Sequence record: ON529851.1
DNA: 64,000 nucleotides
Direction: 5' to 3' (one strand)
Below are positions 5,897 to 37,609 of this stretch, piece by piece. The notes under the pieces are model-generated. The model did no database searches. It was not told the DNA's origin and was given only the letters and a program-made list of their open reading frames with translations. Each line of letters opens with the position of its first letter. Positions within the stretch are counted from its first letter, which is position 1. A program made the position numbers and the translations under genes.

Positions 5897-6056
5897 CGTC
5901 GAATCGAAACGGCGTCAGGTCAAGTCGGCCGGCGTCAAATCGAAATGGCGTCAAGTCAAGTTTGATCGTGTCAAATCGAAATGGCGTCAAGTCAAGTTCG
6001 CCCGCGTCAAATCGAAACGGCGTCAGGTCAAGTTCGCCCGCGTCAAGTTTGATCCG
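5897..6056. repeat. 4 x 36-bp tandem repeat, two CGTCAA-type motifs per unit
   Basis: Units at 5897, 5933, 5969, 6005 (cgtcaaatcgaaayggcgtcargtcaagt...) plus partial at 6041. Confidence 0.95.
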
Positions 6057-24233: not shown

Positions 24234-24479
24234 ATGGGCGAAGTCATCCCGCACCGCGTCTGGCGCAACACCCGGACCGAACGCACCGCTGGCGTGTTCG
24301 GCGCCGTGCCTTGGGTCTCGGACGCGGAGAAGTCCGACTGGGAACTGGTCACGGTCGGCTGGACCGTTCGCCACCCGGACGGCACGACCGGGGTCGGTCG
24401 CTTCGCCTTCGAGACGAAGGACGAGGCGCAGGCTTGGGTCGATGAGAATCCCAACTTCCCCGGCATGAGCCAAGGCTAG
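24234..24479 (+). CDS. Hypothetical protein, only + strand gene of the early zone
   Basis: AGGAGA RBS, inverted CtrA box 24173-24187, terminator about 24485-24515. Confidence 0.8.
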   Translation: MGEVIPHRVWRNTRTERTAGVFGAVPWVSDAEKSDWELVTVGWTVRHPDGTTGVGRFAFETKDEAQAWVDENPNFPGMSQG

Positions 24480-24533
24480 TCACAAGGGCGTCGGTCGCAA
24501 GGCCGGCGCCCTTCGCCGCTGCGACCGGCTCGC

Positions 24534-24893
24534 GTTAACCTTAACAGGGCGTTAACCTTAACAACCCTGCCCGCTCTAGGGGTATGACCGGGTAGGGCCA
24601 GGTATGACCGGGTCATACCGGGGCGGATTCCCGCTGAAAATCACCCAAATTCGCCGAATTTCGCCCAAAATCGCCGGATTTTGACCTTAAATCACTGTTT
24701 TTACTCGATTTTTCAGGTTTTCAGGCGGTTCAGCGGCCGTTAACCTTAACAGGGCGTTAACCTTAACGCTGGAATGGTTAACGGGGCGTTAACCTTAACG
24801 CGGGGATGGTTAACGCGGTGTTAACCTTAACGCCCGGATGGTTAACGGGCCGTTTACCTTAACGCCGGGAGGGTTAACGCCCCCAGGGTTAAT
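24534..24893. promoter_or_regulatory. Dense gene-less cluster of TTAA boxes; GGTATGACC-G-GGTCATACC palindrome at 24601-24619
   Basis: Chained GTTAACCTTAAC and TTAA-N7-TTAA units. Confidence 0.75.
24631..24727. repeat. Phased A/T-tract segment, inverted relative of 25802-25893
   Basis: A/T tracts about every 10 bp; reverse complement aligns by eye with 25802-25893. Confidence 0.7.
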
Positions 24894-24901
24894 CCGGGGC
24901 G

Positions 24902-25137
24902 CGTCAAATCGGGCGCGCGTCAAATTCGGCCGGCGTCAAATCGAAACGGCGTCAAGTCAGGTCGGGCGCGTTGAAGCGCGCTCGCGTCAAATCCAGATCG
25001 CGTCAAATTCGCGGGGCGTCAAATCGCGCTCCCGTCAAATCGGCCGCGCGTCAAATTCGCAGGGCGTCAAATCGGCCGCGCGTCAAATCGGCGGGGCGTC
25101 AAGTCGACCAGGCGGCGTTGAAGCGCGCCGACGTCAA
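24902..25137. repeat. 13 x CGTCAA, mostly at 16-bp period
   Basis: 24902, 24918, 24934, 24950, 24985, 25001, 25017, 25033, 25049, 25065, 25081, 25097, 25132. Confidence 0.95.
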
Positions 25138-25340
25138 GTCGGGCTGCCAGGGCGCGCCCGAGCGGGCTTGCGCGGCGCTCCGCCTTCCAGGGAGGACGAC
25201 CCGGAAGAAACGGCCTGAAACGCGCCCTGACGCGTCTTTGTAGCCCAGGCAGGGGCGCGGTCAAGCCGAGCGGGGCCGGGAAGGCCGTTTTCCGGGCCGT
25301 GGAGCGCCCTGGCGCGGGCGCGGCGGCCGCAGGGTCGCCG

Positions 25341-25789
25341 GAGTCACGAAATCCATCCACGGGCCGGAAAACCAGGCCCTGCGGGCGATCGTCAGTCACG
25401 ATACCTATGAAGCGTGACTCTGCTTGGATTTTTGTCAGTCACGAAACCCGGAGGCGGGCTCCGCCGGCGATCCTGGCGCCCAGGCGGGTCAGCGTCAGCG
25501 GTTGTGTCAATGCAGGACACAATAAGGCGCGATTGCGGCGAAACAGGATTTCAGACCGGAGTCACGTTTGCCGGAATCGAGGCTTGGGGCTTTTGTTGAT
25601 TTCATTGAGGTTTTTCTGGAAATCGCCGCGAAACGGAGTCACGAAGTCCGTTGTGCAGTGCAGCAATGCGCCGGATTTGAGCGGGTCCAGGCGGGGCGAA
25701 ACAGAGTCACGTTTCCCTAAGCCCATGAGATCGTTTAGCTTTTCAGGCGGGGTCGGCACCTGAGTCACGTTAGACACCAACGATGACTC
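25341..25789. repeat. AGTCACG cluster including N12 dyads at 25393 and 25762
   Basis: Half sites at 25341, 25393, 25413(rev), 25436, 25559, 25636, 25704, 25762, 25782(rev, degenerate). Confidence 0.9.
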
Positions 25790-25868
25790 CGGCAACAGAG
25801 GCCCGAAAACAGGCAAAATCGCTGTAAAATCAGGTATTTAGGGGTATTTTCGGGGATTTTAGGCGAAT

Positions 25869-26051
25869 TCAGCGCCGTTTTCGGTGAAATCGGGCCACAG
25901 ACTGGCTGGGAAGGTCTTGCCGCCCCGCTGAACGCCCGGCACGCTGCCGATGTCGCCGCTTCCGCTCCCACGGCGTGGGGTGGATGATCTGGACCGCCCA
26001 GAAGAGCAGCAGAAGGAAGACCAGGCCGCCCATCACGATCGCTATCGCCAT
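25869..26051 (-). CDS. Small membrane protein with basic tail
   Basis: MAIAIVMGGLVFLLLLFWAVQ...; AGGAGAG RBS. Confidence 0.6.
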   Translation of the reverse strand: MAIAIVMGGLVFLLLLFWAVQIIHPTPWERKRRHRQRAGRSAGRQDLPSQSVARFHRKRR

Positions 26052-26084
26052 TTCGCGCTCTCCTGCCCCCTGGGGAAACACCCA

Positions 26085-26290
26085 GGGTCCCTGACGGAAA
26101 AATTCGGATGGGTCCCCGGTCAGGAATTCGCCAGGGTCCCTGGACGAAGAATTCCGAAGGGTCCCCGGCGGGAAAATTCGCCAGGGTCCCTCGACCAGAA
26201 AATCCCGATGGGTCCCCGCCCGGATTATCGCCAGGGTCCCTGGGCGAAGAATTCCGAAGGGTCCCCGGCCCGAAAATCCGGAAGGGTCCC
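26085..26290. repeat. 9 x GGGTCCC at 24-26-bp period with AATT/AAAAT spacers
   Basis: 26085, 26110, 26134, 26159, 26184, 26210, 26234, 26259, 26284. Confidence 0.95.
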
Positions 26291-26650
26291 CGCAGGCTAC
26301 CACGCGGCGGCCGGCGCCGCCATGGGCGCCCGGCGTTAACCTTAATGGGGCGTTAACCATCCCTGTTAAGGTTAACGCCGGGGCAGGCCCCGTTAACCCT
26401 TTGATCGTTAAGGTTAACGCCGGGTGAATCTGGCGCGAGATCGTTGACAGGCGACTCAGGCGGGGTGTCGCGCTTATGCCACAGTTGAGCGGCGCCTTTG
26501 ACTGTCAACGAATCGCGTCTGGAAATCGCTTCCAGCGGAGCCCCGGTTTTGGACCTCTTCCTGACCTTTCCTGGATCATATCCCAACATCCAAAGAAAAA
26601 GGCCGGTGCAGGGCACCGACCTCTTTCGAGTCAGACGGGAAGGGGCCGGA

Positions 26651-33940: not shown

Positions 33941-35137
33941 CTAAGACATGCGCGCTTCCCGGTAGGCTTCGATCTCCGACATGCGCATCGCGTCGGGCGT
34001 TTCCCGGTTCGGCCGCAGCTTCTCCCCTCGGAAGTCGAGCATGAGGACGCCTCGGCTCGCCATCACCGGGTCGATCCCCAGTTCGCGGGCCAGTGTCTCA
34101 TAGAAGCTGACCGGCGCCCAGCAGTGGATGTTGATGCCGCAGCCGATCTCGGGGCTCTCGAACCGGTCCAGCAGGTCCAGCAGCAGCGACAGGCCTTCAC
34201 GGCTGTTGCGCCGATCCTCGCGGAAGTCCGCCACCTGGTCGGTCGTGGCCCCCTGCTCCAGCATGGCGTCGACCTTGGCCTGGGTCTCGCCGGCGAACCA
34301 GTCGTGGGTCTCGCGCTTGATCGCCTGTTGCTGCATCAGGGCGTAGAGGGCGGCGGCGACCTTCGGCTTGCGCACGAAGTCCTCACGCTTGATCCCCATG
34401 GAGCGCCGCGCCGCATTATAGACCGCCCCCACCTGGACGAAGAAGTCGTCACGCGCCGCCGACTGCTTCTTCTCGTTGCCGCCCAGTTCGGCGACGGTCA
34501 TCTTGACCATCAGGCCGCCGAAATAGCCCCGCAGGGTCATCTGGTTCAGTTCGTCCTGGGGCAGGTTGTAGAGGCCGATGCGCAGCAGGTCCTGGCGGAT
34601 CACCTCGCTCTCGCGCAGCAGCTTCTTGATCTGGGCGTAGCCGGTGGTGTCGCGGGGATCGTAGGCGGTGCGCAGCGCGTTGTCTTCGGCGGTGTCGGTG
34701 CCGTAGCGGCGGCGCGTGGCCTGCTTGCGCACCTGGGTGAAGTCCTCGCCGGCCGGGCGCAGCCCGTGGTCGTCCATGATCTCGGCGAAGGTGGCGAAAC
34801 CACCGCGTTTACGGATGGAGTCCAGGATCGACTGCTCGATCTGATCGGCCATGCCCAGCCCCTTGCGGTGGAAACCACCGCTGACGGTGTAAGCGCCGCG
34901 CCGGCCCTCGATCCGCGTGAGCGCGCCGGACTTCCACATGTTGATCAGGGTCTGCGACACCACCTTGCGCCCGGCCGGCGTATCCCATTCCTCGCCGAGG
35001 AACGGCAGCACGTCCAGCGCACCACCGCCCTCCTCCATCCGGCTCAGCGCGTCAGCGATCGCGCGCTTGAAGACGTTCTGGGTCACGGGCTTGCCGTGGA
35101 GGGTCTTTTCGAGGTTGTCGGAGCCGGAGGTGCGCAT
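33941..35137 (-). CDS. Putative DNA-binding protein with winged-helix-like segments
   Basis: Two wHTH-like segments judged by eye; next to iteron array. Confidence 0.6.
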   Translation of the reverse strand: MRTSGSDNLEKTLHGKPVTQNVFKRAIADALSRMEEGGGALDVLPFLGEEWDTPAGRKVVSQTLINMWKSGALTRIEGRRGAYTVSGGFHRKGLGMADQIEQSILDSIRKRGGFATFAEIMDDHGLRPAGEDFTQVRKQATRRRYGTDTAEDNALRTAYDPRDTTGYAQIKKLLRESEVIRQDLLRIGLYNLPQDELNQMTLRGYFGGLMVKMTVAELGGNEKKQSAARDDFFVQVGAVYNAARRSMGIKREDFVRKPKVAAALYALMQQQAIKRETHDWFAGETQAKVDAMLEQGATTDQVADFREDRRNSREGLSLLLDLLDRFESPEIGCGINIHCWAPVSFYETLARELGIDPVMASRGVLMLDFRGEKLRPNRETPDAMRMSEIEAYREARMS

Positions 35138-35162
35138 ATAAATAGCCTCTATGAATCGCCGT

Positions 35163-35192
35163 CATGTTAACCATGCTGACATTCAATGTCAA
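35163..35192 (-). promoter_or_regulatory. Promoter TTGACA-17-TAACAT overlapped by TGACATT-C-AATGTCA palindrome and TTAACCAT
   Basis: Palindrome 35177-35191; TTAACCAT 35167-35174. Confidence 0.75.
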
Positions 35193-35264
35193 GATTATGG
35201 GATATAAATAATGTCGCGTAATGGAAAAATAGGCGAAATGCGCCAGACCACCGCCCGAAACGAC

Positions 35265-35320
35265 ATCACTCGTGCGCTTCGCGCCCTCGTGCCTGCCTCC
35301 GGCAGCCCTCCTTCGGAACT
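35265..35320 (+). repeat. Dispersed two-hairpin element, copy 1
   Basis: ATCACTCGTGCGCTTCGCGCCCTCGTGCCTGCCTCCGGCAG. Confidence 0.85.
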
Positions 35321-35364
35321 CCCTGCGGCCGCTACTGCGTGAACCTGTTTCGGTCCAGACCAGC

Positions 35365-35514
35365 CAAGGCCTGGCACGGCTGGATCGGTTGGATCGGTTG
35401 GATTGGTCCCTGCGGGCTCATTCAGTCAAGGTCGGACAAGGCTTGGCACGGCTGGATCGGCTGCTTCGGGCTCGCTCGGTCAAGACCAGACAAGGCCTGG
35501 CACGGCTGGATCGG
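35365..35514 (+). repeat. 3 x CAAGGCYTGGCACGGCTGGATCGG
   Basis: Copies at 35365, 35437, 35491. Confidence 0.9.
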
Positions 35515-35611
35515 TTCTCCGGTCAACATGGCTGGCCGGCGCCACCGTCTGGTCGGCTTCACAGCATGACAACCTTCGGACCTCCACGACGGGTCGGCCG
35601 AACCGAGTCCA

Positions 35612-35668
35612 GGGCTTCCGGAGGACGGACGGCGAAGCCGGGCACGAGGGGGCGAAGCCCACGAGTGG
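35612..35668 (-). repeat. Dispersed two-hairpin element, inverted copy
   Basis: Reverse complement CACTCGTGGGCTTCGCCCCCTCGTGCCCGGCTTCGCCG...CCTCCGGAA. Confidence 0.85.
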
Positions 35669-35982
35669 TAGCGAGCGCTGACAATAGGATTTGTCATCGC
35701 GCCCTTACAATCTGCCACTGTCATTTTTCACGGCGGTGGTTGACAGCACCACCGGCAGTCCGTAGACAACCTGGGCCGGGAGCGTTCTGCTCAGTCCGTG
35801 ACCGGCTCTGGAAGAGAAGAGCGGCCGGCCCCTCCCGTACGAGGATGCTGGTCGCTCCGATCTCGCGGGATCAGGCTTTCCTGAACTTTCCTGAAATGTA
35901 TCCCAACATTCCGAAGGGGTCCCGCAGGACCACCGCCGTGTAGAATGCAGGACCACCGCCCGCATAATGCGCCAGGTCGAGC

Positions 35983-36125
35983 ATCACTCCTGCGCTTCGC
36001 GCCGTCGTGCCCGGCTCCGCCGGCCGCACCTCCGGTCGCCCTATAGGATAAGGCCCGGCACTCGAACGCAGGTCGAGCCGGCCGCAACGTCAACACGGTG
36101 CCCGACAAGGCTCGGCACAGCCGTG
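35983..36125 (+). repeat. Dispersed hairpin element, copy 3
   Basis: About 95 nt near-identical to 43478-43580. Confidence 0.85.
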
Positions 36126-36244
36126 TGATTGCTTGGACTTTCCTGAAATCTATCCCAAAAAATCGCAACAGCCTTCACGGTCAAACCAATTTTCAACCGA
36201 CTCGGGCTCACGCCGGCCTTGTCCTGGAGGGGCCTAGTCGGCCC

Positions 36245-36532
36245 TCAGCGGGCCTCTGGGATCAGCGGGACGCCGTTCAGGACCGCGTCGAACTGTTCGA
36301 TCAGGTCGTAGGTGGATTTCATCTCGCCGTCGATCTCGACCTCGTCCAGGTTCCAGTCCGTGGCGATGCTGGCGAGTTGCCGGGCGACCCGGACCGCTTC
36401 GAGCGCGGCGAGCAGGCGCTGATAGTCGGGGTCTTCCAGGATCAGGTCCTGGTCGTCCGGGTGGACGCCGATCAGGCGGGTGCGGATATAGCTGGCGAGG
36501 ATGTCGGCTTGGGTCGGGGGTGCTGAGGTCAT
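36245..36532 (-). CDS. Hypothetical protein
   Basis: ORF track; AAAGG upstream. Confidence 0.7.
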   Translation of the reverse strand: MTSAPPTQADILASYIRTRLIGVHPDDQDLILEDPDYQRLLAALEAVRVARQLASIATDWNLDEVEIDGEMKSTYDLIEQFDAVLNGVPLIPEAR

Positions 36533-36614
36533 GCCTTTATGTGTCAGGCATCTTGACCGGGGTCAAGGGGATCGCCGCCCGCCCCGGTGCAACGGAGCGG
36601 GCGCGCAGCCTGGT

Positions 36615-36718
36615 CAAACAGCAAACCCCAGGCGGGCGCACCACAGGGGCGCCTCGATCTCGCGCTCACCGAAGAGCGCCACGTCCGCCGCAGTAGGAAC
36701 GAGAACCTGCGCGAACGG
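36615..36718 (-). ncRNA. Candidate sRNA-3
   Basis: TTGACC(36753-36748)-17-CAATGT; stem with pyrimidine-rich loop, then GCGCTC/GAGCGC hairpin; 3' end uncertain. Confidence 0.5.
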
Positions 36719-36830
36719 ACCTGGACATTGCCGTCGATCCTGACAAAGGTCAAGGAAAATCCCCGCATGTCCACAGGCGCGTCGCCCAGGCCGGTCAAGG
36801 AAAATGCCGCCCTGCGGTGGTCCGGCCAGC

Positions 36831-36953
36831 AAAAACCCGCCGGCGAGGGACCGGCGGGTTCGGGCTCTGTTCAGGAAGCCGCGCTCGTGAAGAGCGCCAC
36901 AGCCGCCTTGCCGGGGAGGTACTGAAAGGAGTCGACGGTCCCGGCGCGACTGG
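36831..36953 (-). ncRNA. Candidate sRNA-2
   Basis: TTGACA(36988-36983)-17-CATACA; no ATG; intrinsic terminator 36831-36860. Confidence 0.65.
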
Positions 36954-37001
36954 ACCTTCTGTATGCCGGGGCTGGCAGTGTGTGTCAATGGGGCTGACAC
37001 G

Positions 37002-37095
37002 AAAAGACCCGCCGGCGAACCGACGGGTCTGGATCGATCAAGATGCTTTATCTCGAAAGCCGGAGCCCCGGACGGCACAGGATACGCGTGCCTTG
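37002..37095 (-). ncRNA. Candidate sRNA-1
   Basis: TTGACA(37129-37124)-17-CATAAG; no ATG; three hairpins; terminator 37002-37030. Confidence 0.65.
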
Positions 37096-37171
37096 TTCCC
37101 CTTATGGGGCGAACCGTGCTGGGTGTCAAGAATCCAGGCAGCCGAGATTCCTCCCGAGGGCGGGCGCCGGG

Positions 37172-37609
37172 TCAAGAGACGGGGCGGACGGCGGTCGCGT
37201 AGTTGTCGAACGCGTCGATTCGGATGCAGAAGGAGACGATGTCCCCCGGCTTGAACCGGTTGTCCGCCTCTGCGATCCAGGCGTCCCCGTCGACAGGTCC
37301 TGTGCGGCGCACGTAGAGGCGTCCCGAGGGGTGGGTGCGTACGATCCCCCTGTAGCGGTTGTTCCTCAGCTTACGGACATCAACCGCGTGGTCGGTGCCG
37401 TCCTCGGTGACCTGGAGATCGAACGCCACGCGCTCGCCCCGATACAGAGGCGCGCAGCCGGAGCGGAATGCGGCGTCCGTGAGCATGGGGACGCGGCGGT
37501 CCCCAGCGGTGGTGTCCGTGATGATGCTATAGGCGCCATCGCGTAGGTCGAGGTAACCGTCTCTGACGTATTCCTTGCGAAAAGCGTACTCTGCGGGTGT
37601 TTCGCTCAT
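37172..37609 (-). CDS. Protein with two cold-shock/OB-like repeats
   Basis: GERVAFDLQVTEDGTDHAVDV and PGDIVSFCIRIDAFDNYATAV resemble CSD C-termini. Confidence 0.6.
   Translation of the reverse strand: MSETPAEYAFRKEYVRDGYLDLRDGAYSIITDTTAGDRRVPMLTDAAFRSGCAPLYRGERVAFDLQVTEDGTDHAVDVRKLRNNRYRGIVRTHPSGRLYVRRTGPVDGDAWIAEADNRFKPGDIVSFCIRIDAFDNYATAVRPVS

Follow-up and report, generated by a model that had tools for sequence, protein, structure and literature searches.

What lies in a 640-nt stretch of a giant phage genome in which the public record places no annotated feature? The stretch is a gap between two minus-strand genes of unassigned function, 37609..37172 and 36532..36245, in Brevundimonas phage vB_BpoS-Marchewka (ON529851; 348,421 bp). 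(Unless marked as genome positions, coordinates are those of the window, the whole 64,000-nt stretch of DNA that was analyzed, which corresponds to bases 62001-126000 of the genome.) Marchewka and Bambus, 100% identical over the region compared, are phiCbK-like giant siphoviruses (Dolichocephalovirinae) whose host is Brevundimonas pondensis. The same locus is present in three related lineages, Papperlapapp, Domovoi, and Kabachok, at about 83% identity. Searches of Pfam, PHROGs, PADLOC, and PDB with the neighboring proteins gave nothing informative.

The cassette that fills this gap is best read as a clade-specific set of phage small-RNA genes, three to four in number and outside every known family. 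A first-pass annotation of the DNA had likewise proposed a phage small-RNA cassette. Comparison with the related phages establishes the anatomy and conservation of the cassette, and upholds the proposal insofar as it concerns independently promoted, non-coding units with strand-specific structure, two of them paralogous; the discrete RNAs themselves remain predictions. The parts of the gap, in the order in which the minus strand is read, are these:

37130..37168, minus strand: conserved 39-nt box GGCGCCCGCCCTCGGGAGGAATCTCGGCTGCCTGGATTC, directly upstream of the P1 −35 hexamer.
37101..37129, minus strand: promoter P1, with TTGACA (37129-37124), 17 nt, and CATAAG (37106-37101).
37001..37094, minus strand: unit 1, a predicted RNA of ~94 nt, with a hairpin (37092-37074), a small CCGG hairpin, and then T1.
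37030-37005, minus strand: stem of terminator T1, 11 bp and GC-rich, followed by a U run (stem and U run together, 37030-37002).
36960..36988, minus strand: promoter P2, with TTGACA (36988-36983), 17 nt, and CATACA (36965-36960), starting 13 nt past the T1 U run.
36831..36957, minus strand: unit 2, a predicted RNA of ~125 nt, with stem-loop 1, hairpins 2 and 3, and T2.
36952-36900, minus strand: unit 2 stem-loop 1, with a 7-bp outer helix, a 6-bp inner helix, and a 24-nt C/U-rich loop containing CGACUCCU.
36897-36881, minus strand: unit 2 hairpin 2 (GCGCUC/GAGCGC).
36880-36863, minus strand: unit 2 hairpin 3.
~36861-36831, minus strand: terminator T2, a 12-bp stem (~36861-36837) and then U5.
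36754..36798, minus strand: duplicated element of ~45 nt, with a second TTGACC and the box CCTGTGGACATGCGGG.
36725..36753, minus strand: promoter P3, with TTGACC (36753-36748), 17 nt, and CAATGT (36730-36725).
36612..36722, minus strand: unit 3, paralogue of unit 2, with an uncertain 3' end.
36717-36682, minus strand: unit 3 stem-loop 1, with a 7-bp outer helix, a 4-bp inner helix, and the loop GUUCUCGUUCCUA.
36679-36662, minus strand: unit 3 hairpin 2.
36574..36606, minus strand: GC-rich hairpin of 10-14 bp with no U tail, between unit 3 and P4.
36530..36566, minus strand: promoter P4, with TTGACC, 17 nt, CACATA, 5 nt, and ATG, its −35 hexamer inside the palindrome CTTGACCnnGGTCAAG.

Each of P1, P2, and P3 joins a perfect −35 box to a −10 box that is weak by the E. 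coli consensus, and this is why an E. coli-style promoter scan calls no promoter at these positions. They resemble the alphaproteobacterial promoter type, (C)TTGAC-N16-17-CTATAT. The pattern TTGAC-N18-CAWW, defined post hoc from the three sites themselves, matches three times on the two strands of the 64-kb window against a shuffled expectation of 0.58, and the matches are P1, P2, and P3. The −35 and −10 hexamers of P1 are conserved in all relatives; those of P2 also are conserved, around a spacer that drifts to 74% identity; and the 40-nt block that includes P3 does not vary among four phages. The 640 nt contain seven TTGAC boxes, all on the same strand. (Dense TTGAC clusters elsewhere in the genome were rejected as promoters, being iterons of a different kind.) The whole 348-kb genome contains 48 strong terminators but only four pairs of promoter and terminator 40-220 nt apart, two of which are units 1 and 2. 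As −35-dependent sites of host type, P1-P3 suggest that the cassette would be transcribed by the host RNA polymerase, early in infection. (A 'motA' annotation in the record, which would have dated −35-dependent promoters as early, was dropped for want of Pfam support.)

The first-pass annotation had placed three minus-strand −35/17/−10 sites at 37129, 36988, and 36753, each followed by some 95-125 nt with no ATG, and had closed the first two of these runs with intrinsic terminators. Coordinates and motifs are as it gave them. Units 1 (37094-37001), 2 (36957-36831), and 3 (36722-36612) are all free of ATG, and both T1 and T2 combine a strong stem with a U run, albeit a short one of 4-5 residues. 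That the third unit lacks a clear terminator, as the same annotation implied, also holds: no canonical terminator was found there, and the 3' part of unit 3 consists of GC-rich hairpins and a broken U tract, ending in GGGGUUUGCUGUUUG. Relative to shuffled sequence, the fold of unit 1 has a z-score of −2.96 and that of unit 2 a z-score of −2.72; the value for unit 3, only −0.82, is no better than that of shuffled sequence.

Could the region nevertheless encode protein? Codon-phase GC across the cassette is flat (0.72/0.63/0.63); the flanking genes display the codon signature of a 66% GC genome, with GC2 of 0.39-0.49 and GC3 of 0.81-0.91. Insertions and deletions relative to the other phages, of 1, 2, 3, 7, and 19-20 nt and one of ~160 nt, break every reading frame. 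One candidate, a 171-aa ORF that begins at TTG (37129..36614), was set aside as not conserved, having no counterpart in Papperlapapp. The other comes from the records themselves: those of Kabachok and Domovoi annotate a gene that starts at an ATG within the P3 −10 hexamer and reads through unit 3 into the next gene, and the Papperlapapp frame through unit 3 is open too. At 66% GC, however, 63 codons without a stop are not unusual (by a rough estimate, ~0.2). Moreover, indels in the RNA loop and in the U tract interrupt the long Kabachok and Domovoi frame in both Marchewka and Bambus, and P4 and its ATG are conserved downstream; the longer ORF through unit 3 is most likely an annotation artefact. 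As far as sequence comparison reaches, a coding function for either ORF is excluded, and we give it almost no chance.

The cassette is well conserved relative to its surroundings. Identity to the three related lineages is 92-96% (unit 1, 93-96%; unit 2, 92-93%; P3 with unit 3, 95-96%), compared with 77-92% for the flanking genes (91-92% for the best one, 77-89% for the upstream gene). In Kabachok and Domovoi the upstream gene encodes a largely different protein (32-36% identical), and still the cassette begins unchanged at its stop codon. In Papperlapapp and Domovoi, a fourth unit separates unit 1 from unit 2. This unit X, which is absent from the entire Marchewka genome, comprises a promoter (TGGACA-17-TAGACT), ~110 nt, and a duplicate of T1; it contains GGAGG, then 5 nt, and an ATG that opens a nine-codon ORF. 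Unit X thus has been gained or lost as a whole promoter-to-terminator block, which shows the units to be independent modules.

Conservation extends to structure. Pairing in the stems overall is kept in 97-100% of cells, versus 19-54% after a shift of the 3' partners by 1-3 columns; for unit 1 the values are 100% versus 44-53%, and for unit 2, 99.2% versus 34-48%. The few changes within stems include G-C/G-U/A-U in unit 1 hairpin 1; A-U/G-C in T1; C-G to U-A in unit 2 hairpin 2; and A-U/G-U/G-C, G-C/G-U, and U-G/U-A in the unit 2 outer helix. The unit 1 hairpin (37092-37074) keeps its loop GCGUAUCCU invariant while its stem covaries, and in the relatives this unit has an additional hairpin of 19-20 nt. 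The unit 2 loop is mostly the least conserved part of its RNA, with only CGACUCCU retained. Covariation among the orthologues of unit 3 was not found. Altogether five pairs have changed on both sides. Because there are only three independent lineages, this covariation is not significant alone: shuffles matched the observed values in about 100 of 500 trials for units 1 and 2, and in 5-9 of 500 for the alignment of unit 2 with unit 3 (range, 5-133 of 500). It is consistent with conserved structure and not decisive. Several of the G-U pairs, however, are possible in the minus-strand RNA only; they thereby identify the strand and favor structure at the level of RNA over that of DNA.

By their sequence and shared fold, units 2 and 3 are true paralogues. 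Both begin with AGGUCC at the 5' end, and both have a 7-bp outer helix, a bulge on the 3' side, an inner helix, and a pyrimidine-rich loop; a 2-nt linker then joins this stem-loop to a GCGCUC-loop-GAGCGC hairpin. The outer helix reads CAGUCGC/GCGGCUG in unit 2 and CGUUCGC/GCGGACG in unit 3, so that two pairs have changed on both sides. The part most conserved between the two units is the hairpin with its flanks, not the loop. A covariance model of the shared part (R1) scores unit 2 at 89.4 bits and unit 3 at 72.6 bits, and recovers the same two copies, at 75-89 bits, in each relative. Searched over the Marchewka genome, R1 reveals no third paralogue, the next best match scoring ~22 bits (at most 22.5). 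The AGGUCC..CGCGC start, stem, pyrimidine-rich loop, and GCGCUC/GAGCGC hairpin that the first-pass annotation had described as common to its second and third RNAs thus are borne out, as a family of two copies per genome.

The gap contains other conserved elements besides the units. Four phages have an almost unchanged 39-nt box upstream of P1, even though the gene before it varies by lineage. A blastn search of the genome located a 34-nt copy of this box, 88% identical, at genome positions 141632-141664; the search for a second copy of the cassette found nothing beyond this 34-nt box at 141.6 kb. The box may assist the promoter as an upstream element or bind a regulator. The ~45-nt element before P3, of which Kabachok has one copy and Papperlapapp and Domovoi two, may be a weak terminator or an operator. 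The GC-rich hairpin at 36574..36606, where one substitution (U-G/C-G) leaves pairing intact, may either serve as the structured 3' end of unit 3 or impede read-through. P4 is the promoter of the next gene, 36532..36245, which encodes an acidic protein of 95 aa. Its ATG, and the distance of 5-6 nt between this and the −10 hexamer, are conserved in all four phages; the gene probably is leaderless.

What, then, might the RNAs do? All three main loops contain UCCU: GCGUAUCCU in unit 1, CGACUCCU in unit 2, and CGUUCCUA in unit 3. A rough composition estimate, applied to what is a post hoc observation, puts the chance of this at less than once in ten thousand. UCCU is complementary to AGGA, the core of the Shine-Dalgarno sequence, so the simplest mechanism is pairing in trans with ribosome-binding sites, as practiced by AbcR, ar14/CcsR, and many other small RNAs. 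Within the phage genome, the longest perfect complementarity to a target is 13 nt, which is the chance level, and the loop 8-9-mers precede only one annotated start, at genome position 184135. With no phage site above chance, the targets, if any, probably are in the host.

We infer the following scheme, in which transcription, RNA ends, timing, pairing mechanism, and targets all are read off the sequence. The gap would hold three tandem small non-coding RNA genes, and its counterpart in two related phages four. Host RNA polymerase would read each unit from its own promoter, with a strong −35 and a weak −10 box. Strong intrinsic terminators would set units 1 and 2 free, as RNAs of ~94 and ~125 nt; the end of unit 3 would be less sharp, formed by GC-rich hairpins shortly ahead of the next gene's promoter. 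In each RNA, a stable stem would present a UCCU loop. These loops would pair in trans with ribosome-binding sites of the AGGA type, probably those of host mRNAs, and thereby change the translation or stability of the mRNAs early in infection. We think it probable that units 1 and 2, at the least, are genuine small-RNA genes. That these two act by pairing with ribosome-binding sites is a tentative proposal, which may well prove wrong. For the explanation as a whole, tandem small-RNA genes whose UCCU loops act on ribosome-binding sites, we lean slightly toward acceptance, and it is the best that we can offer.

A bolder version starts from the Marchewka unit 2 loop, which carries CUCCUUUC and ACCUCC. 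Here the cassette RNAs would mimic the 3' end of 16S rRNA; synthesized in bulk early in infection, they would mask host Shine-Dalgarno sequences, and phage genes such as the adjacent, probably leaderless 36532..36245 would escape. We consider such an RNA-based shut-off of host translation very unlikely.

Quite different readings deserve consideration. The cassette lies upstream, and on the same strand, of gene 33941..35137, whose homologues head the terminase operon in CcrColossus and Kikimora. It might therefore be a cis-acting transcription switch placed before the operon leading to the genes for terminase and head: T1 and T2 would halt any RNA polymerase that had not been modified, and the short RNAs would be by-products. 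Modification could come from a phage factor that is loaded at the promoter, as in the lambda PR'/6S RNA/tR' region with Q, or else from the nascent two-hairpin RNA, as for HK022 putL and putR. The put RNAs have a paired two-hairpin layout similar to that of units 2 and 3, which begin right at their promoters, share their first transcribed bases, and join two hairpins through 2 nt; unit 3, moreover, has no clean terminator. Yet a switch has no need for three or four different tandem units, or for a new promoter directly after each terminator. The next gene has a promoter to itself and an apparently leaderless start, and a TTGACA-N17-TAACAT site belongs to gene 33941..35137, so that neither gene would depend on read-through. 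Furthermore, the syntenic loci of Kikimora and CcrColossus, before the same operon, contain no homologue of the cassette, and protein-family searches found no Q-like gene or antiterminator protein. A cis-acting switch thus appears unlikely. One also could regard the gap as regulatory DNA only, its promoters, operators, and terminators insulating early from later transcription and its transcripts functionless. The seven TTGAC boxes on one strand accord with this, as do the repeated boxes and palindromes (CCTGTGGACATGCGGG, CTTGACCnnGGTCAAG, and the 39-nt box) and the neighboring gaps, which likewise are full of repeated DNA motifs. However, the sequence from promoter to terminator is conserved as much as the promoters or more, while the P2 spacer drifts; and the changes within it preserve RNA pairing, including G-U pairs that would be mismatches on the other strand at the level of DNA. 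Mere regulatory DNA is, in our estimation, decidedly improbable.

The RNAs might also be bound by protein rather than pair with mRNA. They would then be decoys: either an anti-defence RNA, in which the GCGCUC/GAGCGC hairpin mimics a solitary CRISPR repeat in the manner of Racr, or a sponge for an RNA-binding protein or RNase. It is, after all, the hairpin with its flanks that is most conserved between units 2 and 3; it resembles type I-C repeats by eye; and the order of promoter, ~60 nt, hairpin, and tail fits that of RacrIF1 (PMC10651486). The product of the next gene is small and acidic, a kind often used against host defences, and Marchewka also encodes a module resembling Ro60 and Y RNA, so that this phage already uses protein-binding RNAs. 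Specific searches gave a different picture. No Rfam CRISPR repeat family was found on the RNA strand, even when only ~43 nt were searched. Matches to two type I-C consensus repeats were beaten or equalled by 111 to ~51,000 other windows of the genome, according to repeat and unit, and type I-C mimicry accordingly was rejected as unsupported, lying within the genome background. A metagenome scan with a 21-mer from the unit 3 hairpin returned eight contigs, each with a single chance match (17-26 bits) and none with an array, and the cassette neighbors include no defence or anti-defence family. We regard a decoy as quite unlikely, and retain the small-RNA genes with UCCU loops as our preferred reading.

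Should this reading be correct, what would follow? Known phage regulatory RNAs are few; almost all are from enterobacterial or Pseudomonas phages, and most are single genes. A conserved multi-gene small-RNA cassette from a 348-kb phage with an alphaproteobacterial host would take RNA-based host takeover to a new phage group and a new host class. It also would offer a compact, testable locus, with three or four units, the natural gain or loss of one, and a pair of paralogues. More generally, the case illustrates that large 'empty' gaps in the genomes of giant phages can conceal RNA genes, which annotation pipelines either overlook or cover with spurious ORFs, as happened for Kabachok and Domovoi.

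How does the cassette compare with known RNAs? An Rfam/Infernal search, one of the checks proposed along with the first-pass annotation, assigns it to no known family at threshold. At the gathering threshold, the whole window yields only a tRNA, and at E values up to 10, the Marchewka cassette and that of Papperlapapp yield only chance-level matches. The best of these, of unit 2 to ar14 (RF02344), scores 20 bits (E = 0.24) against a gathering score of 58.8, with the hairpins of the model unpaired in the match. ARAGORN detects no tRNA or tmRNA in the cassette. In the phage collection, the cassette occurs in five Brevundimonas phages only, and four patterns searched against IMG/VR gave zero matches. 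A scan of genome contigs, made with a pattern that was too loose, gave at least 120 chance matches from all phyla; the 12 alphaproteobacterial ones among the matches listed rescored at 18 bits or less. In these searches relatives were found within one phage clade only, so that no independent support emerged.

Comparison therefore is by layout. AbcR1 and AbcR2 are tandem, paralogous RNAs of ~110 nt, each with its own promoter and intrinsic terminator, whose C/U-rich motifs pair with ribosome-binding sites. The first-pass annotation had likened the loops of the cassette to those of AbcR. The pyrimidine-rich loops are real; the likeness is an analogy of layout (tandem paralogous RNAs, own promoters and terminators, C/U-rich motifs), and neither sequence nor model of AbcR (Rfam ar15, Rhizobiales) matches the Marchewka or Papperlapapp cassette at E up to 10. 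The cassette, moreover, is phage-borne, includes a third, unrelated unit, and has no known link to Hfq and no known target. The ar14/CcsR 'cuckoo' RNAs of the Alphaproteobacteria similarly are tandem small RNAs whose loops carry pyrimidine-rich anti-Shine-Dalgarno motifs. Their motif CCUCCUCCC, however, is absent from the loops of all four orthologues; only ACCUCCCC is present, in Marchewka alone, and it is not conserved. A type III toxin-antitoxin RNA of the ToxI kind was ruled out: the units differ in sequence and do not share promoters or terminators, and the gene that follows is promoted separately.

Among phage elements, the lambda PR'-6S RNA-tR' region also places a promoter, a short structured transcript, and a terminator in direct succession ahead of the late genes, and HK022 putL and putR, compared by layout alone, are paralogous two-hairpin RNAs. 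In contrast to both, the cassette has three or four tandem units of different sequence, with each promoter following the previous terminator. RNA anti-CRISPRs (Racr; PMC10651486) share with it a phage-encoded promoter, a short 5' region, and one conserved hairpin; similarity to CRISPR repeat models or type I-C repeats does not rise above the genome background. Finally, phage and prophage small RNAs such as lambda OOP, DicF, and AgvB/AsxR (reviewed in PMC12197685) likewise are short, phage-encoded, non-coding RNAs that are made by the host polymerase and act on mRNAs of host or phage, as is predicted for the cassette. Those RNAs, to which the cassette has no sequence relation, mostly are encoded singly in enterobacterial or Pseudomonas phages; here, three to four such genes would stand in tandem.

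The cassette sits at a hotspot of module exchange. In two related lineages the counterpart of the gene on its upstream side (window 37172-37609) is a different, shorter protein (32-36% identity), and the replacement is largely complete in both Kabachok (L003 3092-3385) and Domovoi (L004 3092-3391). Downstream, an 837-nt gene has been inserted in Papperlapapp and Kabachok only.

The number of cassette units also varies. An extra, fourth unit is present in Papperlapapp (L002 3785-3935) and Domovoi (L004 3592-3742), and is absent from Marchewka. In both phages it comprises a promoter (TGGACA-17-TAGACT); a body with an AT-rich start, followed by GGAGG and a nine-codon ORF; and, at its end, a duplicate of terminator T1.

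The next gene, together with its promoter-like site P4, occupies window 36245-36566 (Kabachok L003 3834-4331; Domovoi L004 4037-4549), and encodes an acidic protein of 95 aa for which a search found no family match. Only 5-6 nt separate the end of the P4 -10 box from the conserved ATG, which is not preceded by a Shine-Dalgarno sequence. Judged from this arrangement, the gene appears to be leaderless. The Kabachok and Domovoi records set its start too far upstream, by about 190 nt, so that it falls within unit 3.

Upstream of P1 lies a conserved box (window 37130-37168), of which one further copy exists (34 nt, 88% identical):

Marchewka genome 141632-141664 (L008 15632-15664): second copy, in another intergenic spacer, which separates genes 02710 and 02720

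A non-coding gap of 1.1 kb (window 35138-36244), about 84% conserved among the relatives, contains:

a GC-rich element of 50 nt, present twice (...GCCGGGCACGA.GGCGCGAAGCGCA.GAGTGATG)
GGCGGTGGTC boxes
TTGGGATA..ATTTCAGGAAAGT boxes
three direct repeats of about 45 nt

In phage Kikimora (L133 5450-5890), both the 50-nt element and the GGCGGTGGTC boxes are found again upstream of the homologous gene. This gap may encode a structured RNA or serve as an operator region.

Besides the iteron-bearing region at window 24400-26400 (below), iteron arrays with TTGAC occur at two places in the Marchewka genome, with TTGACTTGACGCC(A/G)TTTCGATTTGACGC as an example of the repeat unit:

window 5923-6046, minus strand: iteron array
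genome 54471-54613 (L007 4471-4613), minus strand: iteron array

These arrays are probably bound by a DNA-binding protein of the phage.

A further non-coding region, GC-poor and dense in repeats, lies directly upstream of the terminase genes. In the minus-strand reading, window 24400-26400 contains:

about 15 GATTTGACGC iterons
numerous GTTAAGGTTAACG palindromes
about 10 GGGACCCTTCGGAATT repeats
several TTTCGTGACTC boxes

The region resembles one that controls origin function, partition or packaging, and the physical genome end may lie nearby.

Two annotations in the record merit comment. That of a "middle transcription regulatory protein motA" (L010 26421-27029) looks doubtful, because a Pfam search with the product gave no match at E up to 0.01. 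The other, an "RNA-binding protein" encoded outside the window (genome 278355-280413; L011 2355-4413), is a Ro60/TROVE and vWA protein (Pfam TROVE, E 2.6e-12). The Rfam YrlA (Y RNA-like) family is matched over its full length immediately upstream of this gene, on the same strand, at 32.6 bits (E 3e-4), which falls short of the gathering score of 69. On these sequence matches, the phage probably carries a module of Ro60 and Y RNA.
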